A model generated the notes under the pieces. That model did not search any database. It was not told the origin of the DNA and was given only the letters and a program-made list of their open reading frames with translations. Source: Ministeria vibrans ATCC 50519 (taxonomy: Eukaryota > Protista > Filasterea). Taken from it: DNA of 64,000 bases. Position numbers and translations under genes: made by a program. Location of the stretch: assembly GCA_943704425.1 (NCBI GenBank), contig CALSCP010000408.1:53973-117972 (forward strand), in the 5' to 3' direction. Shown piece by piece: positions 1 through 54,271 of this stretch (positions within the stretch are counted from its first letter, which is position 1; each line of letters starts with the position of its first letter).

Positions 1-29
1 CCCCCCCCCACTGACCATGATATTTATAG

Positions 30-1222: not shown

Positions 1223-1333
1223 AAAATGTCCAATCTTGAGATAGTCACTTCATTTGCAATTTATCCTGGGGAACACCTTCTATGCACACACCAAGGAAGA
1301 TACTACAACACACAAACACAGACTCTGAGAGTC

Positions 1334-1935
1334 TCACATCGAGCGAGCAAGTCCCGCGAGAGCACCCGCCAGAATCAGTCGACGGAGGGCTTCCACACGC
1401 TCCTTGGAGAGACGTGTGACACTCTCCGTCACCGCCTGACGTCCAATGATCGCGGACACACAAGCCATAATCACAACGTGTTGCTGCACATAAAACGCCG
1501 CTCCAAACAGAGCAATCACCGGCGCATGAGCAATAGGCTGCAGCTTGTCGTCGTCGCGGTAGATGCAGGCAAACGCGATGAGGACCGTCACACCGTACAG
1601 CCCTAAACACACAAACATGTCATTGACGTTCTGTCCTATTTGTGGATTGTACCCGCAGCAATTCGATCGTGAAACAGCCCCAGAGCAAGGTAATCATACA
1701 CGCCCATGGCCACGCCAGCAATGCCGACGGTGCTGGCCATTCTCTTGATCATCGAGTGCGATTTGACCATTCGAGGCGGAGCATCGTAACGACGAGCACC
1801 CAACAGCGCTCCCAGACCCATTAGAGCCGTTCCAAGACTCGCATCCAAACGTCCATTGAGGTACAAGCTGGCAGCCGACGCAAAGGCGACAATCGCAAGG
1901 AGCAGCTCGAGCTTCGACGTTGTTGTTCGAAACAT
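1334..1935 (-). CDS. Small multi-pass membrane protein of unknown function (2 exons)
   Basis: Two hydrophobic ORFs (1636-1974, 1334-1618) joined by a short GT-AG intron at ~1603-1651; several 18-22 aa hydrophobic stretches. Confidence 0.55.
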
Positions 1936-2250
1936 AACACACCTGACAAGAATAAAATAACCACAACTATTCACGTCTCTTGACAGAATTATTTATTATT
2001 GTAAGTGAATAATTCTGTATTGACACTTCTTCTTTGCTCCATCTAACCGTCTTCTAATTTCTATTCTTCTTCGTTCTTGGGGCTAGCCTAATGACGAAAG
2101 CATTCAGCAATCATAAATGGGAAAAATGCAAAGTGCACACCCTAGAGGAAGCAAAATGCAAAGTGCACACCCTAAATGCAAAGTGCACACCTTTTCAAGA
2201 AATAAATGCAAAATGCACACTTGTTTACACTTGTTTGACTCAATCGCGTC

Positions 2251-4867: not shown

Positions 4868-5776
4868 AGGAGACTAAAAGACAACAAGAGAGTCAGACTT
4901 GAAGGCTGAAGAGTTTGATTTGCTAGAACATCTGTGATCTTTCATCTCGTTTGCGCGCGAACGTTGTTTGCGCGCGCCAATTGCAGGGGCGCTGCGGAAC
5001 TCGTGTGGGCAACGGGAGCGCCAGCCTGCACAACACCCACTCGCCCAAGCAGCCCTACTCGACTCGGGGACAGAAAGGTGTGTTTCTGGCGAGCGGGGGT
5101 GCTGTGGTGATGCTCTTCAGCTACTTTCCTTCGGCTGCAACCTCGCTTCGATGGCAAACAGCAAGCAGCAAGCAGGCAAACAGTATTACAGCAACCCATC
5201 ATAATCACCCGACCAGGGCCCAGATACAGCCCACTGTGGGCCAACCAGAGCCCGCATATGTAGAACATATCGAGCAGCGAGCGTGCAAAACAGCCAAGTA
5301 CCCGAAAACGCAAATTAAAGCTGTACTGAAACCCTAACCTGCATATCACCACGAGCAGCTTGAGACCACTGAAGGCTAAAGAGTTCGATTTGCTAGGAAA
5401 AGTGAAAAAACTGAGATATTTCGACGTTGTGAGAGTACCTTTTCGCGCGTATTTTGCTTGCGCGCGCAAATTCCTCACGGGCACTGCGAATTCGTGTGCA
5501 ACGAGAGCGCCAGCCTTCATGACACCCAATTGCCCAAGCAGCCCTACACCAGGTGAGACAGAAGAGGCGTGTTTTCTGGCCATCGAGGGAATGCGAGAGT
5601 ACTCGTCGGCCGCTTCCGTGTGCATTTTGCATTTATTTCTTGAAAAGGTGTGCATTTTGCATTTTGGGTGTGCACTTTGCATTTTGTACTTCAAAAGGTG
5701 TGCACTTTGCATTTTTCCCATCATAAATTATTCACATTTATTTTATTCTCTTTTTTTACTCTTTCTTTTGTCTACC

Positions 5777-6796
5777 ATGATGCTTTCCCGATCCGTCTTG
5801 GTTGCCTGCCGATCACTATCGACCAGTAATACAAGCAAAAAAAAGCACCAGGCAACGTAAAGAGCCCTGTCACTCGTAGGCGCTGCGAAACACGCGACCA
5901 TTGGCTTCATTGGCCTTGGCAACATGGGCGGCCACATGGCAGTGAACCTGGCCAAGGGGGGCCACGATGTGGTTGTGCACGACATGAACGCCGAGGCGGT
6001 GAAACGCGTGTGTGCCCTGAGCAAACAAGTGAGTGCCGAATCGTCCGCGGCTGCCGTTGCGCGCCGCTCCAACACGGTCATCACGATGCTGCCGAGTAAC
6101 CCCCACGTTCGCTCGGTGTACTTTGACGAGGCGGGTGTGCTGTCGGCAGTCCAGCCCGGGTCGCTTCTGATCGACGCCAGCACAATCGATCCGGCCGTGT
6201 CGCGCGCGGTTGCCGATCAGGCCAGCGCCGCCGGAAAGGATCTTGTGTTTGTGGACGCGCCCGTGTCGGGCGGTGTGGGCGGTGCCGAGGCTGGCACGCT
6301 CACGTTCATGGTAGGCGGCGAGGCGGCGGCGTTTGCGCGTGCGGAAACGGTGCTCAAGTGCATGGGCAAGAACATTGTGCACTGTGGCGCAGTGGGCACG
6401 GGACAGGTCGCCAAGCTGTGCAACAACATGCTACTTGCCATTGGTATGATTGGTACTGCCGAGGCCATGAACCTGGGCGTGAAGAACGGCATGGACCCGA
6501 AACTACTGGCGGGCATTCTTAACACGAGCAGCGGCCGTTGCTGGTCAAGCGACACATATAACCCTTGTCCGGGCGTGATCGACACAGCACCCGCCTCACG
6601 TGGCTACACTGGCGGTTTTGGCTCGGCTCTTATGCTCAAGGATCTGGGACTTGCCCTGGACGCCGCTGCTGCCGCACAGGCACCCGTCCCGCTTGGTGGT
6701 CACGCGCGCGAGCTGTACAAGCTCCTCTGTGCCCATGGCAACGCCACAAAGGACTTCTCGTCCATATATGAGTTTCTGGCAGCAGAGAAGAAGTGA
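5777..6796 (+). CDS. HIBADH: Mitochondrial 3-hydroxyisobutyrate dehydrogenase (intron 5826-5879)
   Basis: Presequence-like exon 1 (MMLSRSVLVACRSLST), then IGFIGLGNMG, DAPVSGGVGGA, AKLCNNM, SSGRCWSSDTYNPCPG, LMLKDLGLA. Confidence 0.95.
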
Positions 6797-6858
6797 ACAA
6801 CAATGCGCAACAATGCCTGTATGTGGGAAGAGTGTTTTCTTTTTATAGAGGTGAAAGT

Positions 6859-8353
6859 TTAGTCTGATTTCTGCTCCACGCCCATTTCAAGAAGCATTTG
6901 GACCGTCTGGTCCACTGAGCCACCGACTGAAACGAGAATTTCACGGATGGTTTCCGAGTCAATGGCGGGAAACATATCGTGAAGGGACAGTGCGTTTGCA
7001 TCGAGATCGGCTGAGCTGACATCCGTTTCGGTCAGGGGAGGAGGAAGGGGCTCTGAAGCAGAAGAAGCGGATGGAGGGAGAAAGGACGAAGAAGGAGGTA
7101 GAGGGAAGGAAGGAGGAAAGTGCTGTTGGGGAAGCATGTTCGGAGGAGCGAACATGGGCTGAGGGTAGAACATGACGGGATTGCCACTGGCGTCGTACAG
7201 CTGTGGCTGCACGGGTGCAAGCTGAAGACCAGGCTGCACAAAGGTGGAAGGAGGAGATATCAGATAATATGAAACTAGGACTCTCCCTCTAAAATGTGTG
7301 TGTGTGTGTGTGTTACGTGGAATACGAGTTGGAGTGCCACGGTGCCTTCATGTCCCTGTTTCCCTCTGAGATCAAACGATTGTGTCACCGATTGCTGTTC
7401 AAAGACAGTCTCTAGGTCAATTGCTGCAATCGCAATCTCTTTGTCGGTCGCAATGCCCTTTAACAAGCACAATTGAGTGAGTGAGTGCGTGTCTTGGGTC
7501 GTTTGTGTTTGGCTTACCTCGTCAAAGATTCGAAGGTGCAGAGTATTGTAGCCTGGGAGAATAGTACTAAGAGAAAAATAGTGAGGGTTGAGCGACGTTG
7601 TACACAGTCCAGCTGTCAGAGTTACAATTGCATGAGCTGATTCCATTTGGGTGATTTTCCGCCATTGCGATCAGTGCTCGTTGAAAATTTGAGACTTCCG
7701 ACGCGCACAGAGCAGAATGGGTCCATTCGCGTGAGTCCATAGTTCTTCACCAGAGTCGCATGCCTCACGGTGACATCGAGGACGCCGCGGCGTTCGCTGG
7801 GCGGCAGAGCGACATACTGCGCATTCAAAGAGCGAAAAGAGTGAGAGCAGACACAAACGCCATCGCCATTGCGTAGCGGTACCTGCTGTCCGTGTTGAGG
7901 CACAACAACGGGCCGCGGCATCATGTGGGGCAACATGAGGAAGTCTGCAGGTAGTCTCATGAGCGGTTCGGTCGGTGGTCGATTCTGGGAAAGTTTTTTT
8001 TTTTTTTTAGTTTTGGTTTTCGTGTCAGTGAACTCCGCGTCAAAAAAAAAGACTTTGTAACGTACGGATGCGGGCGGCGCTTGACCATGAGGTGCGGAGG
8101 TTTGAACATGTGAGTGTTGCGGGGGCGATGGGCGAGCAGGAGGGTTTGTTGACGAAGAACTCGGACGAAAGCCGTGGGGAGTCCACTGGAGCGGCTCGCC
8201 GTCGCCGTCGCTGTCGTCCTCGTCGACCGGCAGGCCATTCTGCGATACTGAGAGCCGTGCAAGGCCCTGGGAGGGCGATGAGGATGATGGCGGTGGCGCA
8301 CGCTCGTGCTGTCTGTCTTCTTCGTCGAAGTCTTGCACTCGATTGTACGACAT
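6859..8353 (-). CDS. TOLLIP: Toll-interacting protein homologue (Tom1-binding motif, C2 domain, CUE domain); multi-exon
   Basis: LPADFL; ATLVKNYGLTRMDPFCSVRVG...NGGKSPKWN (TOLLIP-type C2); C-terminal CUE LHDMFPAIDSETIREIL...QMLLEM. Confidence 0.9.
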
Positions 8354-19459: not shown

Positions 19460-22400
19460 CTATTGAATGTCGGCCAACGAAACAAACCGCCCCACCGCCG
19501 TTGAGTCAGTCATGAGCCGCGCGTGACGCATTTCAATCAGATTGCGAAGCCACTTCTGCCGATGGTCCTCTTCAAACTCGGCCGCGTCGCCGCAACCCAA
19601 CACCCCAAGTGCGTCCTTCAAAAGCCCCTGCACCTCCGCCGCACTCGCCTCTTCCTCACCCTCCAGCTGAAGTGATCCCGCAAAAAGATGACACCTGTTC
19701 ACCAGTGTGCGCATTTCAGACCCGTTGCCAGCCGCGCGTCGTGCCACCTTGCTGCCATACGGCACAACCAGCGCGCGTTCCATACACACACTGCGCTGGT
19801 TGCCATGGACGCGCGCCACTAGTGAATGGAGTGTCAGGCAGCAATCGGCGGGACACTTGCGCAACCCCTGCACGAGCGTGTCCGCCTCGTGTGCCGCCAC
19901 AAAGACAACCCGCACAACGCTTGCGCGCACCAAATCCCACTCCATCAGCACATGCGCCGGCGTGCGCAAGTACTCATCGAGCTGAATAATATCAGACATC
20001 GTGACTCGACCGAATTCATGCGACCAAAACCACTCGGTGGGAAACACAACGCACTGTTGAATAGAAGTGCGCAGCAGTGCCCCATCTCGCTGCGACGTAC
20101 ACTCGTGCATACAAAAGGCGTGGAGCGCAAGTCTGTCTCCCGTGGCAATCTGTTCAAGCAGTTTACTGCGCGTCGGTAAGCGCGCTTCCACAGGCGCACC
20201 CACCTCCGTCTGGTGCTCCTCCTCTTCCTCCCGCTGCAACTCCCGCTCCTGCTGCTCGTCCAATTCACGCCCCAGCACAGTGAAGTCTTCGGGCAGTTGC
20301 GCCAACGCATGCTCCTTTTGCCTCTTGAGAATCGCCTGAAACAACTGCTGCACAGCAGATTCTTCATCACCGTCGCTCACGCGCATCCTCTGACACTTTG
20401 CCTCAATCACCGATCGTCCATTGAGTCGCTGCAGTCCATTCGCATACATGCTCTCCAGATCCGTCACCTCGTCCGACGTGCCCGCCTTCCCCGCAAGCGA
20501 ACGGTACTCGTGCGTCAACTGTCCACAGCGCACCACTGCGTGTCGTCGCGCAAAGTCAAACGAGAGCGTCGCCCACAACGACATTTGCGCACAACACTCA
20601 CTCGCCGCATTGCACAGCGTCCAACTCAGCACATCGCGACTTGTCAAGCGCAGCGCATCACCACCAGGCGATGGGCACTTGAGTTGCTCGCGGTGCTTCA
20701 TCACAAGCACTTCAACCTCGTACGCAAGCAGCAACGTTACCGAGTGGCCGGCGCCCAGCAGCCGCATCCGCATTGCCGCTTGCACCAGCTTGTCCTTGTG
20801 CATGCGCGGACCCACCGTCACCACCGCGTGCGTGCCTTCGCACAGCTTAAAGTCCACCCCGCGTGTGTGATGGTCGTCCAGATACACTCCACAGCGGCCA
20901 TTGCGCAGTGCCTCCTGCAGCGGTGAGTACCGCAGCTCGACAATCGTCCCATTGCGATCCACAATCATGCGTTCGTCCACATCGCTGTAGAACACCACTC
21001 CTTCGATGGTCGACGCACGCGTAGCCCGCTTCTCCATCTCTATCCAGGCACGCGCTACCTCCTGCGCACTCAGATCGCTCATGAGCGCTCCCCCGTCAAT
21101 GAGCACGCTTGCCCGTTGCGGTTCAAGCGCCAGCATGCGCTTCAGGATCTCTCGACTGACGCTCTCTCCGTCAAAGGACGCCGCCAGCGAGATTACAGGC
21201 GCCTGCAGCAGATGATGGACCACGAGTGCATTGGTGTGCTGCAATTCGCTCAGGTCTTTTTGTTGAAACTGCACGGGGAAGAGCAGTTGAGCGTCGTTGG
21301 TACCGCTGAAGCCACGCACGGGAAAGCGACGCCCGTGTCGTGCCAGCGACGACCCGTCGTCCGCTTGCACGTCGCTAACGTCGACGTCTCCAGCAAGATC
21401 ACTTGCCGACGCACACATCTTGAGCGGGAACTGCTTGGTCTCGTCGGCAAGTACACAGTGGTGGAGCCAGTAGTCGATAAGAGGCATGCACTTTCGAAAG
21501 TGCTTGCACAGTGCCAGACGCTGCGTCGCATCCTGCAAGTTGATGCCCGATGCACTCGTGGGCACATCTTCGTTCACGGCCGTCAAACTGTCGTACCAGC
21601 TCTTGTAGATGCGCTCCGAGTGGTCCTTGTCAAACACCGTGAGCACCTGGAGCGCCTGCACAACTCCGTCGTAGTCGAGCCCCCGCTCGTAGTACGCAAT
21701 GTGAGTGCCCACTAAAGCCACGTCCGGATGGCCATACTCGGAGCGCAAAGACGGAATGCCCATCGACACAAAGGGAACGGCAATCTTGCGTCGTCGCTCC
21801 ATCTTATTCTGCTGGGCAAATCGCACATCAATGACCCCATAGTCAACATTGCTTCTCTTTCCAAGCACATGCCCGAGCACTCCAAAGGCCAGCAGACCAC
21901 GCAGTGTGAGCACATCAAACTGCCGTGTCATGGGAAGTCCCAACTGCGACAGTGCTTCCACATCATCAGAATCGGTTGCTTCCGGCGATTCGTCTCGTGC
22001 GGGACGCAACACACGACGCAGCAGCGCACGCTTGTCATCGTCCAAATCGGCAATCCAGATAATGTCGTGATTGGCCACAACCTCACTGGCAAAAAGTCTC
22101 TCAATGATGCGCCCACAAAAGTCGGCGTACACCTCGAGACTGTCATCGATGAGTCGCACCGAGTGCCATTCCCCATTAAACCCGGTCGTGCTGCTCTGAG
22201 GTGTGTTGTCCCTCGCCCCTTCAAGGTGAACACGCTCCGGCCCGTACGTTGCGGCAAAGTCAGGCGCACACCACTGCAGTGCATGCATCACCGCCTGTAC
22301 CATCTTCCAGCGACGGTTTCCACCATTCAGCGCAGTCTGATTCCCCATGGTGTACAGCAGTTGCGTCTTCACGCCATTAAGCACTTGGTCACACTCGTCA

Positions 22401-25400
22401 ACAATGTCCCACACGTGTGCATCAACAAACTCCATTACCTCGAGGAGGGCAGTTTCGGATCGATGTTGGTCACTCTTGCACGGCTCTGCCGCACTCATGA
22501 ATTCGCACAACTTGAGACGGAGGGACAGCGTGTGTTCCCACTGCGCCATCACTACTCCGCCGCCAGAGAGCTGACACTCGCGCAGCTGCTCAAGTATCTT
22601 CAAGATGGTCTTCAGATTCAGCTCGATGGTGCGGTGACAAGGAAAGGTGAAGAGCCGGCGCGCCACCAACCCAGTAAGACGCGACGCCAAATCGTCAAAA
22701 TTGGTGCGAAAGAGCGCCCGGAGAATGGTCACACGCGGCACGCACTCGGAGTTGGCCGAGAGCGCCAGGCACACCATGGGAGTCACAACGGAGGTCTTGC
22801 CCTCGCCCATATTCTGCTGCACCGCCTCGTTGCGACCGTGTTCCGTGTCCAGCTGCCGCTTTGCCACTAGTACCTGGTTGCGGCGAATCACAAGTGACTG
22901 TTGCACCTCAAAGAGCAGCCAAGAGGGATAATCGCGAACGCTCCATTCCTGCGAGCGACGGTGTTCCATCACATCGTCGCACTTTTGATCCGACGTCATC
23001 GACGAGCCAAGCAGACGCCGTGCCTTTTGCTGGTACGACATAAACACGCACACAGCGGCAGCGTGTTCAAAGAGTGGCAACGAGTGCTGTGCGTTGTTGT
23101 CGTCCAGAACAAATGGAAGCACCGTCTCAGGCACGAGCGGCGGATACAATCCGGACGCAGCCGCTCCCTTGTTTTGAACACCCTTCAACGACGACACAAG
23201 CACGCCCCAATGCTCACGGCAAAGTTTTCGTGCCATATGCCACACTTTGTGGAGCAGCGCTGCTGTTTGCTCGTCCGTCTGCCACACGCGTCGTTTGGGC
23301 AACGCATCCTTCTGTAGTGCCGCGTTGCTCTCGTCGAGAAGTTTCAGCAAGCGCTGTGTGGCCGGTTCGTCACCGCCGTAGAGCAGTTCACCGTCCGGGT
23401 GAGCTTGGAAGTCCTTGACAACGCCTACTTGACGGACACACCTAGAAAAGGCTTCCTCAAACTCCTCCCACACCCCGGTCGAGACAATGGTCTCGGCACG
23501 TGAACTGATTTCACTCCACACGCTCAGCGGCGCAATGAGTTGCGTCTCGAAGTCGATAGGAACTGATGTGTTGCTGCTGCTAAACGGCACACGCTTGATT
23601 GTGCTGAAAGCGGGCGCAGCAGACGTAGAGGAGACCAGCTGGAGCACACGTTTCACCCAACGGTCAAATAGGCGGCGATTGCGTTGATTTCTCCACAGAG
23701 TGTCCAATGCTTCGATCTCGTTGTGAGCACCACGTGGAAGGTTGTAAACGACGGGCTTGGACTTGGAATTCCAAGTGGGCTTGCGCCAGTCAGAGTTGGA
23801 AAATGCACTCCTTAGGCTCTCTTCGCGCGCCAGTTGTCGCTCACTCCGAGCGAGCGTGTAAGTCGGGATTTCGGCCGCCTTCCACGCTGGTTGCTGTTGA
23901 ACAATATACACTGCCGAATTCATGATATCGCAAGCGGACAGTTTCGCCTGAATCTCATCCGGCCACGAATTGAAGGACGGTGAAACGGCAGGTTTGTACG
24001 ACAGGCAGAGAACGCCCAACGCAACGTCCGAGTTTATGTCATCAAGCGCCACAAGATAACACAGCACATGCACAAATGTGCGACGATTGTCGTCGTTGAT
24101 GTCCTCGAGCGCAAAGCGCATTAGCGATGCAACAGATATGTCCTGCTTTTCCCACGTCTCCATTTTCGTATTCAGCATGCGACAGAGTGACGACTTGTCG
24201 GTACAGCTTTGCGTGATGTTGGATTTGGTCTGTATTTTCTCGCGCGCTGCAATCCGCATCCGCTCCACAGTGCTACGCGGCTCCACAAACGCAGCAGTGG
24301 CCAGCGAGGCAAGTCCTCTACGCGACAGGTCAGGACCCAACTTCCCTTTGCAACGTGCGATGGTTTTTTCAGCCAGTCGACTCTCCTCGTCGTGTGTGAG
24401 ACGAGCCGATGACGGATAGAAGGAATGCCAGCGCCAGTAGGAGCGCGTGGCAAAGTCGAGACGACGAGCGCCTCTGGGGTGCTCCTTCACACGCTCAGAA
24501 TCAATACCACCGCTGCCGTCATCGTGGTGAAGAGCACAGAGCTGAAGAGACTCTTCGATCATGAGATAGACACGCAGGAAAAGCGCATCACTGGCACTCA
24601 GTGAATCAAGGCGTTTCCGCCAGGTGGTCGTTTCGTACTTTTTGGAGAAGTTGACGTGAGGGACACGCTTCGGCGAGAGAAGTGCAATGACACTGAGACT
24701 CCCGAGCTTCTCGCAGTCGTAGGGAACGTTGGAACGCGACTGATCAAGCCAAGCGAGGGCGCACTCAAGGCCTGTACGACCAGTGAAAGGGTCGCGAAGA
24801 GTGCGCGACGACAGGGCATGAAGGTAGGCCAGGTGAAGACGATGAAGAAGAGAGGGAGCGTCAAGGCGCTGCAGCTCGTCGTTAACAGAGTAGTCGAGTA
24901 CGCGCACGCTATCCTTGGTGGTGGTTGATTCGGCAAACACAACGTGAAGATCAGAGTCAGTGCTCGCTGACCACTGGAGCTGGTAGGGTGTGAGGACGAG
25001 GCGGCGACGAGAGGCGAGCTCATTCGGTGATTGCTCAAGTACGAGCACGTTGTGTATGCCGAGGAGAGTGCCAATGGACTGCTGAGGTGCCACGGCAAAG
25101 TTGGCATACTGCAACGAGCGAATGGTGGCGTTCGCAAGGCACACGGTGAAGGAGAGACTGACACGCGGAAGAATCACGTTTAAAAGTCCGTTGTACGGCA
25201 GGAGCACGTGAACAAAGTCGGACGACTCAATGCGACCAAACACCGTGTTGTGCAGTCGCTGAAAAAGGGTGGATTGACGTGACACAATGAACTGGCCTGC
25301 ATCGCAGTTGTCAGCTCGCAACGTAGTGCGCAGTGTCAAGACCGATTCATTCAGAGCGCCAGTGTAGCAAGGTGATGCAAACGAGTCGTCGGCCATGTCG

Positions 25401-28400
25401 TCATGACGATACGGGTGAAGCTCAAGAGTATCTGATGCCTTGAGCCAGTGTGTGTACTCGTGCTGAAGTGTCCAAGGCAACACCTTGGTAAAAAGTGTTT
25501 CGGAGACGAGGACGCGGCGCACTTTGTTCGTGTCGCGATGCGCCACATAAATATTAGCACCGTTGAAGTCGCACAGGCAAAAATCCCAGCTGCCTGTCTG
25601 GTAGAGGTGTCCCAGGGCGACAACGTTTTCAAAGATGCGCGATCCAAAAAGACGCTTAAAAGTGGATGACGAGGTGATGCCTTCGGGGAGACGCCCCAGC
25701 GGCGCACCGTCGACAAGAAGCTCGCCCGAGATAGGATTGTACTGGACCAGCGCAGCGTTTCCCTCAACATCGAGTTGCGCCACCCTTGTGAAGTACCAGT
25801 TGCCGTCGGAATCGGACGGATAGCGGTGAAAGGCTTCAGCGGAACGTTCGGCAGCCCCAGGCCAGGCATCGTCTTGCGTGAGAATGAGCATGGGCAGCGC
25901 TGGGCAGTCTTGGAGTCGCTGGTGAATTTGCTCGGTGTGCATGTGGGCGACACGAAATGCATTGGCATAGAGCGCACAGAGTTCCTTGCCAGACACATCG
26001 ATCCACTCGTCGGCATTCGGTAATTTGCTGCACAGAATGGGCACGAGCGAGCGCAGTCGACGGAGTGCTTCAAGTAGTGTGAAAAGCGAGTCGTGCTGGT
26101 CGGTGGCGCTCGAGTGCCTTTCAAGAATGGCACTGTCGTACCCAAACGTGAGCACCTGACAGCAGAGAATGCCAACAAGAATGCGTTCGTAACCAATGCG
26201 CTCGTCCGGCTTGTGCAACTTGGACAACACCAGTGAGACTTTCGCGTACCAGTCAGCGGCAATCAGACGGCAACGAGCCAACAGAGCAACGGTCGTGGTG
26301 GGACTGGGGTCGTGCGTCACAATAAGTAGGTGCGACGCAATGCGCACGACGGATATCAAACTGCGCAAGTTGAGCCAATTTTTGTGGATTTTGTCCAGAA
26401 AGTCGGTGAGTGTCACCTGCGAGACGGACTCGACAACGCCCATTTCGCACAAATCTGCTTCCCACTGACGCAGCACAGAGCAGTGGCGGCGGTGAGGGTT
26501 CATGGGCGGCCCGGTTTGTTGGACTGTCTGGAGGATGAGCTGCGCGACGCCATGTTTTTCAAAGCGCAGACGGTGCGATGCGGTGAGTTCGGTGAGGAGA
26601 CGTCGCCAGTTGAGGTTTCCGCCGTCGCTGCGCAGCGAGGTAAACGCCTCGGCCTCGTCGCGCTCCAGCAACAAGTGGCGACTGCGCTCGCAAGTCGCTC
26701 GGTTCTCGGTGATGCTGGTCACGGGGTCGACGGCGTCAGAAAGCGAGTGGTAAGGCGAGGAGAGAGGCACGCAGCAGAGAGCAGCAATGAAGCGGATTAG
26801 GGGCGTGCAAAACGTGGTTAGGTGTTTGTCGCTGCGTGTGACAAAGACAGTGTTGCGAGCGGCCCCACAAAGTACAGAGTCTTGCGAAGCAGCCTGCACC
26901 TGTACGGAACGGTAGTGGCAAAGCGTTATAGCTTTCGCTGTTGTGTGCAGAACTACCCTGTCCAAGGAGCAACTGGTCGCTGAAGTCGGTAGACCTTCTT
27001 GGCACCAAGAACCAGGGTTGCCTCTCCACCGATTTGAGCTTGGCGCAAGAGATTCGTGAGGCTTAGGTTCTGCAAACTGACACACAAGCGACGACCAGGC
27101 ATTCATGAGCGAACGGTAGATTGGGGGCATCCACAGCTCAAAGGCAACAACGTGTGCTTGGGTGGCGGCGGTGGGAAGCAATCGCTCATACTTTACAATC
27201 GTCATTTCGTCAATCCGTCGAGTGAGGTTTCGACGTTCTTTACATTGGTTGCATCTCGTCAATATGTCGCACGTGCATGGATCTAGTGACTGTCGTTGTG
27301 CCGTGTAGAGCGAAATCAAGGACTTCGACGACTTCAGTTCGCGAAGCTTTTGGCTTTCACATAGCTTCTCAGAAGTGCGCACCTCTTTAATGCGCTCCAA
27401 CAGCTCGGGTGACTGTTGGACGCACACATCGGCAAGGGAACCCGAACACACATCGAAAATTCCTTGCTTGGATGTAACACTGTGAGCACGCTGGAGCAGA
27501 TAGGCCTCAAAGGAGGCAACAGCACGACGGTCGGCGTGCGAGGCAAGCAAGAGGACGCGCAGAGCGGGAAGAATATCGTATGGCGGCGCGTACGATTTGG
27601 CCAGGGAGGATGTGCGTGTGACAAGACGATCAATCATGAGAACGCACGCGATGGAGGAGAGCACACGCATCGACTGGACTTGGGGATCCCGCTTCAGACC
27701 AAGAGGGTACGCGAACTCGGCAAGCGAGTCATAGAGAGACAGCAATGCTGTGGATGTCTCGAGAGTCCACGTCAGGGTATCCACTGTGGCCGGCCACAGC
27801 ACATCGAGGGTGAAGCGCTGGACTTGGGTGAGAGCAAGGAGCTCTGTAGTGGGGTTGGTCTTGTTTGAGAGAAGTTGAGTGCATTCTGCCACAACTTGCA
27901 CAAGAGTGTCGTCGGAGACAGCGTCCATGTTGAACGTGAGGCGAGACGTGGACGGTACGGGAGGGAGCGCATTGCCATTGTCACTATCATCGCAGTTTTC
28001 AGCCATCGCGGGAGGTGCGAAGGTGAGAGAAGTTTCGAGTCGATGCTCAGTGTGTTCGGGATTAGTCGCGTCGACGACGAGCGACTGGAGGTCGAGAAGG
28101 GGAGTGTCGCGCGTACGATAGTCGCTCGCGTGGTCGCAGAGACGCTCGTGCTCCGTGCAGGCAGCGGCTGCATCGCCAAGGACACAGCGCGCAAGAGTGC
28201 TGTTGGTTGTGTCCACAATGAGCTTTTCCAGTTTGGCGCTACGACGAGCAATTTTCGCGGCAAGTTGCACAATGAGTTCGTCGTCAGGTGGATAGTCGTC
28301 AGCATTGGTGTTGCAGTGGTGAAGTTTCGAGGTGAGCAAATCGAGGATGAAACATTTGTAGGTGACAGTGCCACGATCTACATCAATCAAATAAAAGAAC

Positions 28401-29301
28401 GGCCCGTCTTTATCAGTCGCGTGGTGCAAATAAAGAGGGGAGGAGGGGGTCGGGAGGATGGGGTAGGGTGGAGGGGGGTGACAATAATGAATAAATACTA
28501 AATTTTAATACCTTGATTGTCGACCAAAAGCTGGTGGTGGAAGATGGAGCGAATCACATCCCATAGACGATCCCGACGCCAGACACAGTTTTCTGAGCGG
28601 TAGAATTCGTCGGTGGGAAACTTTTTGGTGACGGTGACAAAGTTTTGAGGAGCAGTTTGGTCGTTGGGAACGGTTGCAGCGAGAGACGGCAGAAGAAAGT
28701 GATGGACAACAAAGTCTCTCTCCGGCTCGCGCAACTCGTCGTTGGTGGCGCCGGGTTTGGGGCCCTTGCGAGCCTGAACGTACGTGTTGTCGATAGATGA
28801 CCGCTGCAGGGCCGTGATGAAGGTGGGAATGCTGTCGCGGGCGTTTGCGGGAACACATGCAACTGAGGCGGGCACTGTACAGGAACGGTACAGCGCCAGG
28901 TCGTCACAGCTGGCGACGTCGTGGTCGTGGTCGTCGGCGTTGACAAACGACTGGTAGACGGTGATGTGGCTGTGGTCGGGGCTGATGAGCACTGCCGAGG
29001 AGTGGTGCTGGATGAGGAAGGAAACGCGCGGCACGACATGGGTGGCGAGAAACCCCCGCAGAGCAGACAAATCGTCGTGGATCGACCGGCTGCTGTATGG
29101 TGGTGTGGTGGCGTGCGAATGGACCGGCGATGAGCGGTCGAGGTTGAGGAAAGCAAGCGGAAAGGCCTGTGGGGTCGAGTGCGGAAACATCTCGCAGAGG
29201 CACGGATCAGGCCGACGCGGAAGCGTCAAGTGCATCAGCTCGGTGCGGAATTGCTTTACTGCTTCGGAGTGCTTGATGGAGCACTCGGTGGGGTTGGTCA
29301 T
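19460..29301 (-). CDS. Giant (~3250 aa) DUF6606-DUF3638-DUF3645 family P-loop protein; single intron from 28511 to ~28378 or 28408
   Basis: N-terminal HLTLP...VTKK..D..WRRDRLW (DUF6606-like); QNMGEGKTSVVTPM (Walker A); IVDECD (Walker B); IAVPF...RSEYGHPDV (DUF3645); GFSGTND, LIDGGA, DDHHTRGVD, LVQAAMRMR, EQQERELQREEE. Confidence 0.85.
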
Positions 29302-45874: not shown

Positions 45875-46742
45875 GAGTGATCAGTAATGAGTGGTGAGTG
45901 ATGAGTAGACGAGAGGAAAGAGGGAAGAACAGAAATATTTTTTTGAAGAATGAAAAAAAAATCAAATCATCTGCGAACGTCTCTACAGAGTGGAAGGTGA
46001 TCATCCACATTCCACAATGACTAGTCACTCTCAAACAACAAGATAAGACCTAGGCTGTACGTAGACCGTTTGAACTGACTCTATTCGCCGTTTTCGACCA
46101 TATTAACGAGTCGATTTTTTCGTTGCAATTCCTTGCAACTCGTCCAATCTACATTCGTTTTAGTTTTCTGACTTCTCCCAAATTATTCACTCTATTTTCT
46201 CCTTTTTCACCAGTGAACCTGTGAGAGACTGAGAGTACTGAGTAGTAACGGATTGCGTTAAGACCCGACAGACATTGAAGCTCTAGACGCACTGAGCACG
46301 TAAGGCTTAATTTTGCCATCACGACTTTTTTTTCCCCGTAACTTTTTTGATGGGAGAGACCTCCACACCCCTTCGCCTCTACGTTTCTACCAATACATGG
46401 TGCATTGGTGTTATAATGTTATTGGGGGTTTCTCAGATTGTTTGTGGCTCTCTGTCAGCCTCATGTAACCGAATTTAGGTTATTGGGATGTTTTTGCCGT
46501 CCTTGCATATTTTTGCATTAATTTTTTCTCGTTTTTTATATATTGAGTTTATTGACTGGCTAGTGTTGGGGAAAGGCCCCTTAAATCTTAATCCTTATTC
46601 CTTAATCCTCTTCATTCGCTCATGTAGTATCTACATCAACCATTTTGTATTGCACATGCTTGCCCCACTAATTTTTATTATCTCTTCGAATAATTCTTTT
46701 ATTGTTCTTTTTACAGATTTTCCTGATTGTCTTTGCCTCCAA

Positions 46743-49700
46743 ATGGTTGCCATTAATATTGCTTCTGTTGTTGTTGCGCTGCTGTGTGGCTCCATCATTC
46801 ACGTGGGCGCCACGCACTATGCGGAAAAATCCACCACCTCTTCGTCGTCTCGGATGGACTCGGACTTGCCTTTCAACATTTCAAATGCTCGCTGTGTCTA
46901 CTACACTCCCGGTGTCATTGGCCTCAACGGCGACAATGGATACGCCAACTTCTTCGCGTCTGCCTACTCCGATATTCACCGACGCGATTTGCGCGCCATT
47001 GCCTCGTTTGCAAACTGCATTCGCATCAGCGGCCTGCCTAACAAGCCTCCAAAGCCCTTTTTCCGCATCGTCGATACATTCAAGCTTGACGTCATTGCCA
47101 CATTCAGCTCCTCAAGGTTCGAAGAAGAAAAAAAATCTCCGCAAAAAACAAAAAAAAATACCCCCATGGACATCTGTGGGTCAATAGGTTTGAGTATGGC
47201 TTCTTTCAGGACATTCCCGTCATCCCGTGTAGAAGTTTAATGTTTTATGGGCAAAGCGTTGTGCTGCCCTCTGCTTCGTATTTCGACTTTCGTCTTGTTT
47301 ATGCTTTGAGCTTTCTACACACTTATTCATTTTTATTTTTGTAGATACGATTTGCTGTACTCAGAATCGCGCGGGTCTCGCTCCGTCCTTGTCCACGACT
47401 TCCATGAGTTTATCGGCCAATACCGCCTGCTGCCCGCCATCAAGTGGTGGGCGCTGGTTGACATCGAAACGGCGCTGCCCACGTTCTCGCCGTATGCCGC
47501 CGCCCAGATGTTCCTCACCCTCTCCGCCTTGACCACAGCCGCGCGTGTGTATGATTCACGGCCCATCATCATGCCGGTGTTCCTCGCAGGCATCCAGAAT
47601 TTGGATTACGTGGGCGACTTTGACACGCTCGACTTTGACATTTGGCTTTTCAACATCGACAACTTGTCTCCCACAGGCTATATCGAGCGAGCGACAGGTG
47701 CGCTCGCGCACGCTCACCACCAACGCCCCGTTATCGTTCAATTCACCTCGTCGCCGTGGGACTTTGACACCAACATGGCGAATGACAGGAAGCAAACGAC
47801 AACCATCCACGAGCTCCTTGCCGCAACCAAGTACATCAATGCCCAGACCCCCACGTCGCAGGCCATCGTGGGCATCATTTTGCAGGAGTGGGCTGACCAG
47901 TGGTGGCGCAACGAGCCAACTTCGAGTATCAAGACGTGTCAGACGGCGCATCCTTACGTCCAAGCCCCCTGCGGCACTGCACAATTCCTCGCTTCCCTTG
48001 GCAACATCTCCCTCGCGTCTGACCTTACGACAAACAACTACAATGGTCTGGCTGCCCAGTACAACCTCTATGGCTCCCATTGCCTCCGTGTGCGCCTTGC
48101 CGGTGCCAATATCAGTGCCATTTGGGCGCAGGAGACAGGTCGAGGTCCGCCCCTCAGCGAGAATCAAACTTTATGCTCGACACAAGTGTTCGCTCTCGTC
48201 GACTACGCAAACCCTCACATCGTCTGGGTTTGTCTCTTTCCCTTGCCTCTTCTGCTTTTCGTCTCTCTCTTCTTCTATTGTCGCAACGCCACTAAAAAAA
48301 GCAAACACGACCCCACCGCCATCGGATGCGATCCGCACGACGACCGAGACGATCGTGACTTGGTGGTTCTGGGTGACTTTGACCTTGACACGGGCAATTT
48401 GGAAGCACTCTCGGGTACCCTGCAGGACTTGCGTGACAAGTATACATCACTCAAAGCGTGCCAGGACACACTTGTCGTGACCCTCTGGAGTAAGGATGGC
48501 TCCGACGCAGACCTAACCTCTCCGGCTTCAGTTCCACGCAACAGCGAACTCATGGACGCCCTGAGTCTCCTCGAGACTCGTTGTACGCGTACTGGCACCC
48601 CTACTTTGATTCCTTGCTCCACCGTCGACGACGACGACGACGACGACGACATGCCATCTCCTCCTCCAACCACCTCAACTAACGCACCCAATGCGAAATT
48701 GCTACGACGTCAGGAAAATGCCCAGAATGCGCTCAGCCGAGCACGAGAGAACAACTACGAGCTCCTTCGTGGCTGGGCCAGTGATCTCGCTTCGTGTCGT
48801 GACGATATTGCGCTTGCTGCGAGGCTTCTCGACACGGCGGAGCACCAGCTCAACAATGTGTTTACCCACGAAGCTCACGGCGCCGGTATCTCGTCCGTGA
48901 CTTTCAATGACATCATTGATGCGCTGCGTTCTGCCCGCGCATTGCTCAAGGAACTGCGGGGCCTTCCAGTTACCTTTGCCGAGACCATCAATCAACACAA
49001 CCGCGCGCTCGTTCTTGCCAGTGTTCCCTTCGACGCGTCTCACCTCGCCGACTCTATCGGGCTTGTTCTCGACGCCAACGGCTGGTCTGTCAAGTGCAGC
49101 GTATGGAGACCTCGCGCCCTTGACGGCTCCATCAAGCTTCATCTTGGTGCGCACGACACCGAGAGCTACCTGTGGATTGGGAGTCACGTTGAGAACCAGC
49201 TGCGCCTTTGGCGCGATCGCATTCACTCTTTTTGCCTTCAACGCACAACTTGTGTCGCGCCTGCGGGCGCCGGTCAGGTCCGGCGCCTTCTCACTCCCTA
49301 CGACCTCTGGCGCTTGCTTGTGATGCGCCCAAAGAAGCTGTACGGCCTTGACTTGGACTCTCTGTTGCGTGACAAGCTTCGCGCCAACACCCGCGACCCA
49401 AACGCCACTCCTGGCACATTATCCGTCGACAGTCCCGTTGCCTCTGCTCTTATTCTTCTCTTTGGCATTGTGGGCAGCGTTAGCGAGCAGATTATTTACT
49501 GTCCCGCCGCCCTCTGGTACAAGTATCAACAAATTCTGAATTCAGGCGATACGGTCATATTGGCTGATCGCATTGAGCTTGATCTCAAGCCATTAGTCGA
49601 GCCGTCGCTTTCAACTCCCGAGGCCCTTCGATCAGCCTCTTTGGGCACCGACACAGCAGCGAGTGCAGCTCGGCGCAACGGTTCGGAGGACGCCCCGTTG

Positions 49701-52700
49701 CTCAGGAGCACGCGCTTCGACGATGACTTCTTCCTGAGTCTTGAGCGAATTCACGCGCGCCGTACCTTTGACGACGTTCATTTTGACGACATTGACGACT
49801 TCTATGCCCAACTTCTTGGGCCGTCAACCGCAGGGGTTTTGGAGCAACGACCAACGAAGCACTTTCACGAGTCCCCCTCCATTTTTGTTTTGATCGATCT
49901 ACTGCGCAACGTCTCGTCGCTTATTCTCATCAAAATGTGGGTGCTGGTGGCCGCTTTTTTTGCGTCCCTTGCATACCACATTGCCTATCCGGATCCCGTT
50001 GTTGTTCTGGCACTTACCTACGACGTTGTTGCTCTGTACGGTGCCACCATCGACTTCTGTGCGTGGTTCGCCGTCGAACTTCTCTCTATCTTGCACTTGC
50101 TTGCGTCGCGCCGCACCAACCGTCATCTCTGGACAGCGCTGCGTGGCGCCTGGGTTGCCGCACCACTCGTGGCCTCCACTCTCAACTTTGCCTTTGGTTT
50201 GCTTGCCTTTTACCTTGCTCCATCAACTCTTCTTCAGGCGGCCTATCCCGCCTTGCGCGTCTCCTACTGTCTCATTTTTCAGTGCATTGTACCCCGCACC
50301 AAATTGTTTGACTATTTTGCCACGGACCGCGCGAAATTGACCCCGGTTGTCGGTCATACGCGGCGCCTTGCAATCCTCTGGTTTGCCATTCTTTGCACGT
50401 CTTTCCTCCTCGATTTTGGCCTTTTTGTGCCTAGCTTGCTGGGCGTAACACCCTCTTCGATGTGCAACCTTGCATGCCAGACGAGCACGGGTACACTCGA
50501 GTTTGTCTTCCACTCCAACGTGTGCATCGCGTGCACCTTGGGTGTCCTCTGCGTCTGGCTGTTGGTCGTGCTCTCCTCGTATGTCGCCGTGTTCATTCTC
50601 TACTCGCTGTTCATCAGTTGCTACGGCGTCATCGTTGGCTTCAATCGAAAACTCCCTGGCAGCGGCCTTCATGCCACCAAGGGCTCCTTTTCCATTGGTC
50701 CCAAGGGCGAACAGGGCGCTACCTTTGCGCGACACTTTGCCTTGCCTAGTAGTGATGGTTCCCGCTTTTGGGGTCCCTGTAATGAGATGTGGCGTGCGGC
50801 CATTCTTGACTTGCACGAACGTTCGTTGATTTTTGAAAGCGAAGCGCGCAGTCTGCTTAGCACCACGGGCTCCGTTGAGTTTTCCAACCTTTCAAATCTG
50901 TCAAGCGTGGCACAGCGTCGCCTCTGGCGCCTTTGTAGCGACAGCTACACTGAAGGAGACTCGCGGCGCATGCGTCTCCCGTCGCTCAAGTGCGACGCGC
51001 CCCTTGTTTCACAGATTGTGCTGTGCTACTCGGAGACGATTCTGGAGGATTGGGCCAGCCTTGTTGACATGACCATGGGAGCGGGCGAGTGGTGTCGTTT
51101 GCATTTTCTTGTGCGCGAGGCCCCCGACGAATGGGCCGTCTTTTGTGAGCATCTGCAGAAGTTGGCAATTGCACGACTGAACCCCAGGTCGGCAGGAGGC
51201 GAGGGTGCGCCGTCCACGCCCGCCGACGAGTCGCTCGTGTTTGACCACACTCCTTGGTATGGCTATTCGGCGACGGCGAGTCCCGCCGAGCGCGACTTCC
51301 TTGTGCGCTTGCTCGGCGATGGCTCGCCCACGCACGCCTCACTCGCCGACTTTGCCACCAATCTTCTGCAGCAGATCCCGTACACCTCGCCGGAAGCTCT
51401 CGGTATGTTCCAGGACAAAATCCGCTTGTGGGCAAGCTTTCGCAGTCAGACCCTGGCACGCACCATCCGAGGCGCAGTGACGTACCAGAAGGCTGCGCGT
51501 GCTCGCGAGCATTCACGTCTCTGTGTGGCCAACAGTGCGTGGCGTCGCGCCGCTGATGCGCTGCTTGATCTGCGCAAGGACAACCCGCATGCAATCTGGT
51601 GTGCGCCGGCCTTTGACGAGGTGGTCAAGGACAAGGGCGAACTGGACGACGAGGGATTGTGTGAGTTTCGCAGTGTTGTCGAGCAGTTTGAGCCACGCGG
51701 TCAAATTGTCTTTTCTCACCAAACGTTTGGTAAGCGAGACAACGACAGAGTGCGCGCCGACGTCTTGCGCGTATTGCATGAGTATCGACACTATTGGGTT
51801 GACTTGGTCTTCGACGTGGCGCTCGACGACGGTGACCGAAATCCACTTGTGCGTCTCATCAAGGCGCATCACGACAACCGCAACCTGAGTATTGGTGGCA
51901 ACATTAAGTATGCCTCGTGTGTGGGACGCTTGATGCGCAACAAAGCTGGCAGCACTGTTGAGTGGAATGGACTTGATGGCAATGCCCTAGATCACTTCCA
52001 ACTTGTCTCATGCGTGTTTCGCCGCTACCCCCTGCGTCTGGGCGACAGCAAGTTTCCTTTCCAGACGCAAGGCAAGCCGGCCAACCAGATTCTCGCGCTG
52101 CACGGCGTGTGTGGTCCAGCCGTGGTCTGCATGGATGCGAATCAGGACGGCTTCGTGAGCGAGTGTCTACGTCTGCCCGACGTCGCGTCATGCCTGTTCA
52201 CAGTGGCGAAGAACAGCAAATTCGAAGACGGAGACGACACGCCAGTCATTGGGTCACGCGAAGATGTCATGACGGAGCGGCAGAGCCTTGTTGGCTGCTT
52301 GATGGCTCAAATTGAGGAGACCTTTGGCTCGCTGACCCAGCGGTCATTGGCCAGCCTTGGCATCCGCCTGCACTACGGACACCCGGACCTTCTCAGCCTT
52401 TTGTTTATCCTGAGCGCCGGTGGCCTCGCCAAAGGTTCGCCCGTGGTTCATCTCAGCGAAGATGTGACCACCGGCTACCGTGTGCTCATGGCGTTACGTG
52501 AGTGGTGTGGCCACTCGGATGAACCTGTGTGGCTAAAGGGGCGCGAGACGGCCTTTCGCGCGGCCACACAGTTTTTTGACAAGATCGCCATGGGCTCGGT
52601 GGTTTTGATGCAGACGCGTGAATTGCAACTTCTCTACAGCCGCATGGGTGTGTTGGGCTCGGCAAGCATGTTTTTCAGCACGACCGGCCACTTTATGTCG

Positions 52701-54271
52701 CAGTTTCTGATGGATTTTGGTATTTTTCTGTACGTGCTGACGTTCCTCTTTCTCTCGCTTGGCCAGATCAGCATTATGACTATTGGTCTCGTTGGATCCA
52801 CTATTGCCGCCGAGTGGGTCATTGGCTTTGGTGCACTGCTGGCTGTTTCCTTTCTCTTCTACTCCGTTCTCGAGCGCCACCTCGAGGGTCTTTTCCCGTT
52901 CGTGGCCACCTTTGTGCAAGGATCGCTTTTCTTTGCATTCAACATGCGCACCACTGCATCAGCTGTGTCCAAAGCGGTGCGCACGGGTCTCGCAGAGTAC
53001 GTGAGCACGGGCCGTCCGCTGCCGTACGAGCGACCCTCGCTCGTCGACCTGTACCACTACTACCGCACGCCCGCTTACTGTCGCGCCATCAACATTCTCA
53101 TCATGTACATTCTCTATCGTGGCCTCGTCGACGAGTCAGGCGGCTACCTTCCCATGTTCCTCCCACTCATCGCCGTCAGCACGTTGCTCCTTCTCCCCAT
53201 TCTGTTCTCTCCCTTCCCCGCCTCCTCCATTTCCGCCGTCCAAGACGCCTTTCTCTTTCTTTTTCGCTACAACGCCAAGGACGACCGTGACAACGACGAG
53301 GTACCCAAACGCATTCGATGTTGTTATTATAATTATTATTATTAATTTTATTGTTATTGTTATTGCATTATACTTAATATTATTATTATTGATTTTCTCT
53401 CGCATTGATTGGTGTTGTTTAATAGCAAAAGAAAGCGCGGCTTGCAAACGCGAGTGAAGGCGCCACTCTGTTTGAGAAGGGCCGGCGCGAGATGCGCAGT
53501 GAGGTTGCCATGGACCATTGGGTTTACTGGCCGACGCGAGTGCTCTTTGAGCTCGCCGCTTGTCTTGTGCTCTTTTCCGTCGCCTACTCCAGCTTCATTG
53601 ACTACCTCTTCTTCTGGCTACTTGCTCTTGAGATAACCATCATTGTGACAGTGCTTCGACGATTTCGGCCCAACTCGTTCACTCACTTGTTGTTTCTTCT
53701 CGCGCCCATTCTTACTCTGTTGTTGGCGCCCGTCAACTTTCTGGCCTTTCCCATTCTTGGCATTGAGCTACTCTACAGCGGTCTCCTGTACGCCTCTGCA
53801 ACACGGCTGATCATTTCGATCTTTCAGCTGGTCCTCAAAGCGTTTGAATCCATCTTGCATCCGCGTCGCGTGCGCCAGCGACACGCCGCGCTCAACCAGT
53901 GCGATGGCACACTGCGGTACGTGACGCTAAACGATCTCCATGATGGGCTGGATCGTGCTGCACGCGAGGCGCACGAGCCATCGCCCCTTGTGCTTAGTGC
54001 CATGGACTTTGTCTTTGAGGCTAGCATGCTGTTTCATCTTGAGTGGCTCCGTGCTCTCGTTGTCTTCTCCATCCAGAGCGCCCTGCTCCTCGTCATGGCG
54101 CTTCTCGATCTGCTGCTAGGCCTCCCGTCCGCCCTCTACTTCCACACTCCCTTTTTCCTGGGTGGCGCTCTTTTTGGACGCTTCTCCCTTGCTCCCCTCC
54201 GGCGTCAGGTTGCCGATGCCGCCGACGCGCGTGACCGCCGACTCCCCAAAAAGCAAATTGGAAAGCGATAA
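46743..54271 (+). CDS. 1,3-beta-glucan synthase (GT48, FKS/callose synthase type) with N-terminal signal peptide and GH-A-like barrel (exons 46743-47116, 47345-53300, 53426-54271; ~2390 aa)
   Basis: IRLWASFRSQTLARTIRG, QGKPANQ, MDANQD..SECLR, GSRED, EETFGSLTQR, RLHYGHPD, VHLSED, KGRE, YVSTGR; multi-TM blocks on both sides of the core; N-terminal VYYTP...HRRDL...NCIRI...QEWADQWWR. Confidence 0.9.

Follow-up and report, generated by a model that had tools for sequence, protein, structure and literature searches.

We analysed a 64,000-nucleotide stretch of the genome of the filasterean Ministeria vibrans ATCC 50519 (assembly GCA_943704425.1, contig CALSCP010000408.1, positions 53,973 to 117,972 of the forward strand), called the window below and numbered from its first letter. 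The locus at window positions 46230-54271 (+) is a single expressed gene, and its product is a 2391-residue membrane protein in which a putative beta-1,3-glucan synthase of glycosyltransferase (GT) family GT48 follows a domain predicted to lie outside the cytosol and to have the fold of clan GH-A glycoside hydrolases (GH). A first-pass annotation, made from the letters of the window and its open reading frames (ORFs), had proposed such a fusion and suggested that the protein makes beta-glucan and remodels or binds it outside the cell. Here, we describe the gene, its product and its relatives in other protists, and weigh what the outer domain may do.

The coding sequence (46743-54271) is divided among three coding exons of 374, 5956 and 846 nt (7176 nt; 2391 codons plus a stop), and all features of the gene lie on the forward strand. 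The transcript starts with a non-coding exon of the 5' untranslated region (UTR) at 46230-46299, of which the 3' end is exact and the 5' end approximate. It was located with contigs from two RNA-type sequencing runs, X1 and X2, which carry 70-73 extra letters before 46717; the last 30 of these match 46270-46299 uniquely, with a GT donor at 46300, and the exon is absent from the DNA run X9. An intron of 417 nt in the 5'UTR (46300-46716, GT..AG, acceptor ...tttacag at 46716) separates it from exon 1 (46717-47116), where the first ATG of the transcript stands at 46743 within the open frame 46488-47240, followed by a hydrophobic, signal-peptide-like segment and by strands beta1-beta3 of a barrel. 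Intron 1 (47117-47344; 228 nt, GT..AG, phase 2, junction codon AG/A for Arg) leads to exon 2 (47345-53300), which is open throughout and belongs to an open frame of 1997 codons at 47352-53345. Intron 2 (53301-53425; 125 nt, GT..AG, phase 0) is predicted from its splice signals, the reading frame and the homology of exon 3; if it is not removed, the frame stops at 53345 and the C-terminal transmembrane (TM) helices are lost. These helices and a TAA stop are encoded by exon 3 (53426-54271), as judged from frame, hydropathy and a weak collinear homology to the C-termini of the homologous proteins P0004, P0001 and P0009.

Splicing of intron 1 was observed directly. Exactly 47117-47344 is missing from the contigs of X1 and X2, and the X9 contig reads through it; therefore, spliced RNA is the source of X1 and X2. 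Run contigs were aligned to 46650-52640, a stretch that ends ahead of intron 2, and those of X1 and X2 cover 46717-48613 and then 48657 to beyond 52640. Among public runs, 94% of the sampled words of the stretch occurred in four runs of one 2025 study and 98% in two runs from 2022, with traces in a marine poly-A metatranscriptome. The joint was also supported independently of the reads, since a profile hidden Markov model (HMM) of the ectodomain family built without exon 1 nevertheless recovered exon 1 (E = 2.1e-14, model positions 9-94). Across the whole genome this family HMM matched only the present locus, with exon 1 at positions 9-94 and exon 2 at 83-377, so that by these positions the barrel is complete only once the two exons are spliced. 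In a phmmer search against a database of 120 proteins, exon 1 matched P0004 with E = 1.5e-8. Hence, the claim of one spliced gene has held, with the 47116/47345 junction present in RNA-derived contigs and exon 2 covered as far as the alignment reached, save for a short gap at 48614-48656. A single-letter difference was noted along the way at 47615, the third letter of an ectodomain codon, where X9 reads T and the window, X1 and X2 read C; this is probably a strain or allele difference.

The gap at 48614-48656 bears on the explanation that the fusion is an artefact, made of two adjacent genes or of contaminant DNA, as it is crossed by no single contig in any run; the very long branch of the window protein in the GT48 tree (2.08, see below) also speaks for such an origin. 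However, the gap coincides with a poly-Asp codon repeat (43 nt, eight Asp) in the predicted cytosolic linker, which splits all RNA and DNA short-read assemblies examined. Because the same repeat breaks the DNA contigs, we regard the gap as an assembly effect inside the uninterrupted 1997-codon frame. DNA depth is uniform along the locus, the gene contains spliceosomal introns as do other parts of the contig, and other organisms supply at least 11 independent proteins with this domain order in single ORFs. We therefore consider an artefact extremely improbable.

Topology was predicted from hydropathy and the positive-inside argument, with the exon pieces analysed separately. The product would consist of a signal peptide, an extracytosolic domain of ~415 residues, one TM helix (TM0), a cytosolic linker of ~530 residues and the GT48 synthase, which is the order read by the first-pass annotation. 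Beyond exon 1, the remainder of the barrel (beta4-beta8) and a Cys-containing beta subdomain are encoded at 47345-48218, as assigned by fold and profile evidence. Five N-x-S/T sequons precede TM0 (one in exon 1, four in exon 2), as do several cysteines, and four cysteines in the exon-2 part occupy well-conserved alignment columns; together, sequons and cysteines fit exposure of the N-terminal domain to the secretory pathway. TM0 and the basic stretch RNATKKSKH were placed at 48219-48275 (exon-2 residues 290-308, hydropathy 2.56 over 19 residues). The basic stretch after TM0 argues for a cytosolic location of the next segment. A TM helix is found at the position equivalent to TM0 in homologues, and in the structural model of P0121 it spans residues 399-428. 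The linker (48276-49871) is a clade-specific N-terminal cytosolic region homologous to a region of P0127, and it shares the motif HFDDIDD with P0001-P0014.

The remainder of the protein has the layout of a GT48 enzyme, a predicted cytosolic GT domain between two multi-spanning TM bundles. The first bundle, with about six hydropathy peaks, is encoded at 49875-50600 (exon-2 residues 842-1083), the catalytic domain at 50601-52703, and the second bundle begins at 52704-53300, at the end of exon 2, where hydropathy from residue 1785 onwards continues into exon 3. The family model PF02364 (Glucan_synthase) matched the last ~900 residues of the product of the 1997-codon frame with 199.1 bits against a cut-off of 37.2 (E = 1.6e-58), and the structures of yeast GSC2/FKS1 matched the C-terminal 1183 residues of exon 2 in phmmer (E = 2.4e-30). 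FKS1_dom1 (PF14288) was not detected in the window protein. In alignment with FKS1/GSC2, the active-site motifs RxWAS.RSQTL, QGK..NQ, DANQD, (N/S)ED and KGR(D/E) are all represented, as RLWASFRSQT (51423-51452), TQGKPANQ (52065-52088), DANQD (52134-52148), SED (within 52449-52466) and KGRE (within 52533-52550). From these sequence features we take the synthase to be presumably functional. This is the only GT48 locus of the 29.7-Mb assembly. Its nearest GT48 relatives among 5.8 billion proteins are 28-34% identical and comprise a Physarum transcript, a protein of the cercozoan Mataza, EukProt transcripts and transcript-like contigs from Logan and JGI. The window GT48 scored 200-314 bits against this protist clade, compared with ~140 against plant callose synthases (CalS) and 108 against yeast FKS1.

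All motifs from which the first-pass annotation had read a GH-A-like barrel are present, VYYTP and HRRDL..NCIRI in exon 1 and PAIKWWAL and GIILQEWADQWWR in exon 2, and on profile, fold-model and hhalign evidence well above chance level the ectodomain is indeed a clan GH-A (beta/alpha)8 barrel. The family profile, built from alignment A1, retrieved GH2 TIM barrels (E = 2.2e-8) and a GH158 chain (E = 3.9e-4) from the PDB. An AlphaFold2 model of P0121, the closest full-length homologue, was computed from a 17-row alignment (predicted local distance difference test score, pLDDT, 79.9; predicted template modelling score, pTM, 0.79); in it, strand and helix alternate in eight units, accompanied by a small beta subdomain and the TM helix. 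In Foldseek, its best PDB match was the laminarinase LaGH157 from Labilibaculum antarcticum with bound laminaribiose or laminaritriose (E = 8e-11), followed by GH2 glucuronidases. A structural aligner gave the same order, with Z = 26.6 for LaGH157 (root-mean-square deviation 3.1 A over 294 residues) and Z of about 24 for GH2. GH157 is a family of endo-beta-1,3-glucanases (PMC10229575). Folded alone, the exon-2 piece of the window protein yielded a partial barrel (pLDDT 70.5), for which Foldseek returned GH53, GH2 and GH158 barrels with a best E of 6e-6, and in a language-model protein atlas this piece adjoined GH2_C/GH5 clusters. Comparison of the eukaryotic family with a bacterial GH158-like copy by hhalign gave a probability of 98.8% (E = 8e-17), and the domain of the family member P0011 matched yeast Gas2 of family GH72 (E = 9e-6). 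The nearest solved relative was thus shown to be GH157 by fold, and GH2 and GH158, plus GH72 for P0011, by sequence. No Pfam GH model matched the exon pieces of the window. Over 17 family members Pfam reported GH72 in two (best E 1.3e-5) and GH2_C in one, and in full-length P0011 both GH2_C and GH72 stayed under the Pfam cut-offs. Because no Pfam GH threshold was reached, the ectodomain is not assigned to GH157, GH158, GH72 or GH2; GH157 and GH158 were compared through PDB chains.

We then inspected the positions that carry the two catalytic glutamates in clan GH-A. At the end of beta4, where the clan has the Asn-Glu pair of the acid/base, the window has Asp-Ile (WALVDI, 47460-47465; alignment A1 and hhalign), and at the end of beta7 it has Gln in place of the nucleophile Glu (VIVQF, 47739-47741; alignment, strand 127-131 of the AlphaFold2 model of the exon-2 piece). 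In the family alignment, W-A-L-V-D-I of the window stands against W-S-F-G-N-E, and V-I-V-Q-F against F-L-T-E-F. The canonical residues are found in P0011, of which GNE at beta4 and TEFG at beta7 align in HMMER with GNEV and SEFG of Gas2, which we take to carry the GH72 catalytic glutamates. P0011 is the only one of the 14 aligned members with Glu at the nucleophile column, which is occupied by Gln in 11, and at the acid/base site P0127 retains D-E. Across the family, no stretch is better conserved than that of beta8 (QEWADQWWR, 47883-47909), with its E, W and D nearly invariant; the best-conserved single residues are these three, two cysteines and one glycine. Residues of the C-terminal face of the barrel, the beta2 Arg and the beta8 Glu-Trp-x-Asp, are kept across the family.

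An active-type relative was recovered from a JGI metagenome contig (Ga0209573_1002969, L035). This contig is bacterial-looking, with IspG, Asp/Glu racemase and inositol-1-phosphate synthase as neighbours, and encodes at 15-3407 (+) a protein of 1130 residues with three tandem GH-A domains that have the beta8 motif of the ectodomain. Copies 1 and 2 contain GNE, (I/L)E(F/Y)GAD and EW.D.WW[KR], and the best PDB match of copy 2 is GH158 (E = 8.7e-8). In hhalign against an active-type copy (GNE, LEYGAD, EWVDQWWR), D-I of the eukaryotic family fell on N-E and Q on the nucleophile E. Since the beta8 Glu co-varies with the change from E to Q in eukaryotes, we had asked whether it is the nucleophile in a new place; this was rejected, as the bacterial active-type copies have both residues, and the beta8 Glu is more likely a sugar-binding residue. 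Separately, copy 3 of the same protein has N-R and L-A-Y-G and has lost both catalytic glutamates, in parallel with the eukaryotic pseudo-enzyme.

These positions bear on the question whether the ectodomain is an active glucanase or transglycosylase that works on the nascent chain, which would make the protein a one-polypeptide synthase-remodeller like fungal Ags1. Such activity would agree with the conserved lining of the pocket, with P0011 and P0127 keeping both glutamates and D-E, respectively, and with Schizosaccharomyces pombe Ghs2, which branches glucan together with Bgs3 (PMC13612389). In principle, the lost residues could also be replaced by the beta8 Glu or by a Glu that follows the acid/base column two residues later. 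However, neither canonical position carries a carboxylate in the window, which has Ile and Gln there, the downstream Glu (VDIE) is not conserved across the family, and the beta8 Glu coexists with a normal nucleophile in the active-type bacterial copies. Retaining enzymes of clan GH-A become inactive when the nucleophile Glu is lost. We hold an active remodeller to be quite unlikely, and the ectodomain is, judging from its sequence, probably a glucan-binding pseudo-glycosidase. Of the two functions offered by the first-pass annotation, remodelling is disfavoured by the replacement of both catalytic glutamates (D-I, Gln), and binding is the better alternative.

The same domain order was found in other protists. 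With the family HMM, the domain was located ahead of a TM helix and a GT48 body in P0003, P0004, P0006, P0007, P0011-P0014, P0074, P0128 and P0129, and a scan of metagenomes with a sequence pattern added L062, so that at least 11 other protist proteins have the fusion, none of them annotated as such. The features that define the family, a signal peptide, a barrel with the beta8 E-W-x-D (EW.D.WW[RK]), a conserved Cys subdomain, a TM helix and then GT48, are present in the window protein, and P0004 repeats the motifs of the window as VYYFP, HERDL..NYIRLSG and IIFQEWSDQWWRG. The first-pass annotation had advised a search for this order; the result takes away any idea that the architecture is peculiar to this organism, and leaves it unannotated elsewhere. 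An exhaustive HMMER search with the exon-2 part against 1.84 billion representatives returned only 11 proteins, several of which are contig-end fragments, and P0128 and P0129 are complete GT48 fusions. One of the 11, P0131, was discarded as an RTX repeat protein with a spurious match. A word-indexed protein search with the ectodomain alone gave no match, which reflects the sensitivity limit of that search, as HMMER gave 11. When the beta8 motif was searched for as a degenerate DNA pattern, 50 matches arose, and of these L062 and L035 alone truly belong to the family.

In a maximum-likelihood tree of the GT48 core, the window protein falls in a clade with nine fusions (Shimodaira-Hasegawa approximate likelihood ratio test, SH-aLRT, 99%), which also includes sequences from Amoebozoa and Cercozoa. 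Its branch of 2.08 lies at the base of the clade; the tree was a quick one, and long branches make the exact position of the window protein unsure. P0001, P0002 and P0009 of the same clade are N-terminally incomplete. P0129 (L010:501-10721, +, on a 1.5-Mb ENA contig) is a frame of 3406 residues in which N- and C-terminal modules of GH81 come first, then the ectodomain family, then GT48, which makes it a glucan machine of three parts in a eukaryotic assembly. GH81 is a family of endo-beta-1,3-glucanases.

Two side observations concern these GT48 sequences. On the contig of P0003 (L002), a gene for ribosomal protein L6e (1-459, -) lies head-to-head with the synthase ORF (501-7637, +) at a distance of ~40 nt, which indicates either a very compact source genome or a chimeric assembly. 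P0031 (2657 residues, Logan/ENA) combines a kinesin motor (PF00225, E = 2e-93) with FKS1_dom1 and a full GT48, and recalls the myosin-chitin synthase fusions of fungi.

The distribution of the domain also bears on the alternative that the ectodomain has no carbohydrate role and is a module for structure or trafficking that controls folding, mediates oligomerisation or docks to other surface proteins. An analogy is given by the SLC3 heavy chains, whose GH13-like ectodomain accompanies amino-acid transporters. The loss of the catalytic residues would suit such a module, and so would P0005, P0008 and P0010, members of the same GT48 clade that are apparently complete without the domain, so that it is dispensable for synthesis. 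Nevertheless, the best-conserved residues (beta8 E-W-x-D, beta2 Arg) belong to the substrate-binding face of the barrel and not to its outer surface, the Gln of the nucleophile column is itself conserved in most members as expected of a ligand contact, and the co-fusion with GH81 in P0129 links the module to beta-1,3-glucan. A purely structural role therefore appears rather improbable to us.

On balance, we judge it fairly probable that the window encodes a GT48 synthase with a non-cutting, glucan-binding pseudo-glycosidase ectodomain, joined in an old fusion. The GT48 body would polymerise UDP-glucose in the cytosol and extrude beta-1,3-glucan as FKS1 does. The ectodomain, tethered by TM0 beside the exit, would bind the emerging chain in the manner of a lectin and no longer cut it; at the cell surface, or in a lumen should the protein reside in an internal membrane, it may keep hold of the polymer, orient it or pass it on. 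The fusion would be old, being common to the GT48 clade that includes Amoebozoa and Cercozoa. One member keeps both glutamates, so the domain in the original fusion probably had beta-glucanase or transglycosylase activity, and most lineages, the present one included, would have converted it to a binder.

Several points weigh against a glucan-binding pseudo-glycosidase at the cell surface. The fold by itself does not specify the ligand, and binding and activity are predictions only. GH2 barrels (Z of about 24) come nearly as close as GH157, so the case for beta-1,3-glucan specificity depends chiefly on the fusion partner and the co-fusion with GH81. The full-domain model is that of a homologue, P0121, which is 26-27% identical to the window pieces, and the window's own model covers the exon-2 piece at its lower pLDDT. 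The Glu of VDIE and the conserved beta8 Glu leave room for non-canonical catalysis, the protein may sit in the plasma membrane or in an internal membrane, and the poly-Asp repeat has yet to be bridged within one contig.

A wider proposal, which we put forward as tentative and more doubtful than the reading of the protein itself, concerns its history. The ectodomain could represent a branch of clan GH-A that is invisible to Pfam, fused to GT48 early in the history of eukaryotes, before the Amoebozoa, Rhizaria and the filasterean lineage split, and repeatedly turned from a glucanase or transglycosylase into a Gln-bearing, non-hydrolytic receiver of the nascent chain. It would imply that a close unicellular relative of animals makes a beta-1,3-glucan surface matrix with synthase and lectin combined in one machine, a cis-linked equivalent of fungal Ghs2-Bgs3, with GT48 present in the holozoan stem and lost toward animals. 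In the literature searched, no GT48 in Ministeria or other holozoans was found. The presence of a GT48 glucan synthase in a unicellular organism so close to animals raises the question which beta-glucan structure, such as a coat, stalk or cyst, its cells would make. Coupling of a synthase to extracellular partners with a glycosidase fold has only recently been seen as a principle of beta-glucan synthesis (Ghs2-Bgs3, 2026), and the present gene is a covalent version of it. At least a dozen protist sequences have this design, and domain libraries label them only as glucan synthase. With barrel and pocket kept and the nucleophile replaced by Gln, the family offers a natural test of holding versus cutting a chain, and P0011 with both glutamates provides an internal comparison of active and inactive forms.

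Two other features of the window were recorded apart from this gene. An intron-free frame of 290 residues at 5924-6796 (+) encodes NAD-binding domains of the 3-hydroxyisobutyrate/6-phosphogluconate-dehydrogenase type (PF03446, E = 9e-43; PF14833, E = 1e-31). The longest open frame of the window, of 2989 codons, lies at 19460-28429 (-).

The window protein can be compared with several known systems. It shares the PF02364 family, the active-site motifs and a cytosolic GT between two TM bundles with fungal FKS1/GSC2 and with plant callose synthases. FKS1 and CalS start in the cytosol, whereas the window protein first adds a signal peptide, an ectodomain and an extra TM helix; after TM0 it is arranged like FKS1, whose N-terminal region is cytosolic. 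The layout of a glycosidase fold outside, a single TM helix, a synthase inside and an exporting TM bundle is that of fungal Ags1/Mok1, an analogy already drawn with Ags1 in the first-pass annotation. The outside domain of Ags1 is regarded as an active transglycosylase, unlike the window ectodomain, which is without the catalytic pair. The modules differ as well: Ags1 joins GH13 to GT5 and makes alpha-1,3-glucan, and the window protein joins a GH-A-like domain to GT48, so that it is not of the Ags1 type. The Ags1 layout is also cited in PMC13612389. We found no description of the window's architecture in the literature on GT48 in protists and Holozoa or on GH fusions, in agreement with the first-pass annotation, which knew of no characterised example.

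The coupling of GH domains to synthases is already known, and a GH-GT48 fusion as such is not new. In S. pombe, the GT48 synthase Bgs3 has an obligate partner in Ghs2, a single-pass GH16 protein that works with it to branch glucan; the GH domain of Ghs2 was modelled beside the extrusion pore of Bgs3, and the pair was called a 'bipartite synthase-remodeler module' (PMC13612389). The window gene is the covalent, cis counterpart of this pair, with a single-pass GH fold that would likewise lie outside the cytosol at the glucan exit. Ghs2-Bgs3 consists of two proteins with a GH16 beta-jelly roll proposed to be catalytic, whereas the window has one protein with a GH-A barrel that is probably non-catalytic. 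The discussion of the same paper states that some oomycetes fuse GH16 to beta-1,3-glucan synthase and calls this fusion oomycete-restricted (PMC13612389). It is unconfirmed, as the main text of Morris et al. 2009, which is cited for it, does not mention glucan synthase, and the oomycete GT48s among the listed matches (P0073, P0114) have transporter domains instead. The oomycete fusion, as stated, would likewise place GH and synthase in one polypeptide, with a different GH family and fold.

Finally, the window ectodomain has its fold in common with GH157/GH158, GH2 and the Gas/Gel enzymes of GH72. It differs from those enzymes in the absence of the catalytic Glu pair and in the addition of a Cys-containing beta subdomain and a membrane anchor. 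What is new here, in relation to Ags1, Ghs2-Bgs3 and the stated oomycete fusion, is the fold family, the catalytic loss and the distribution in a clade with Amoebozoa and Cercozoa sequences.

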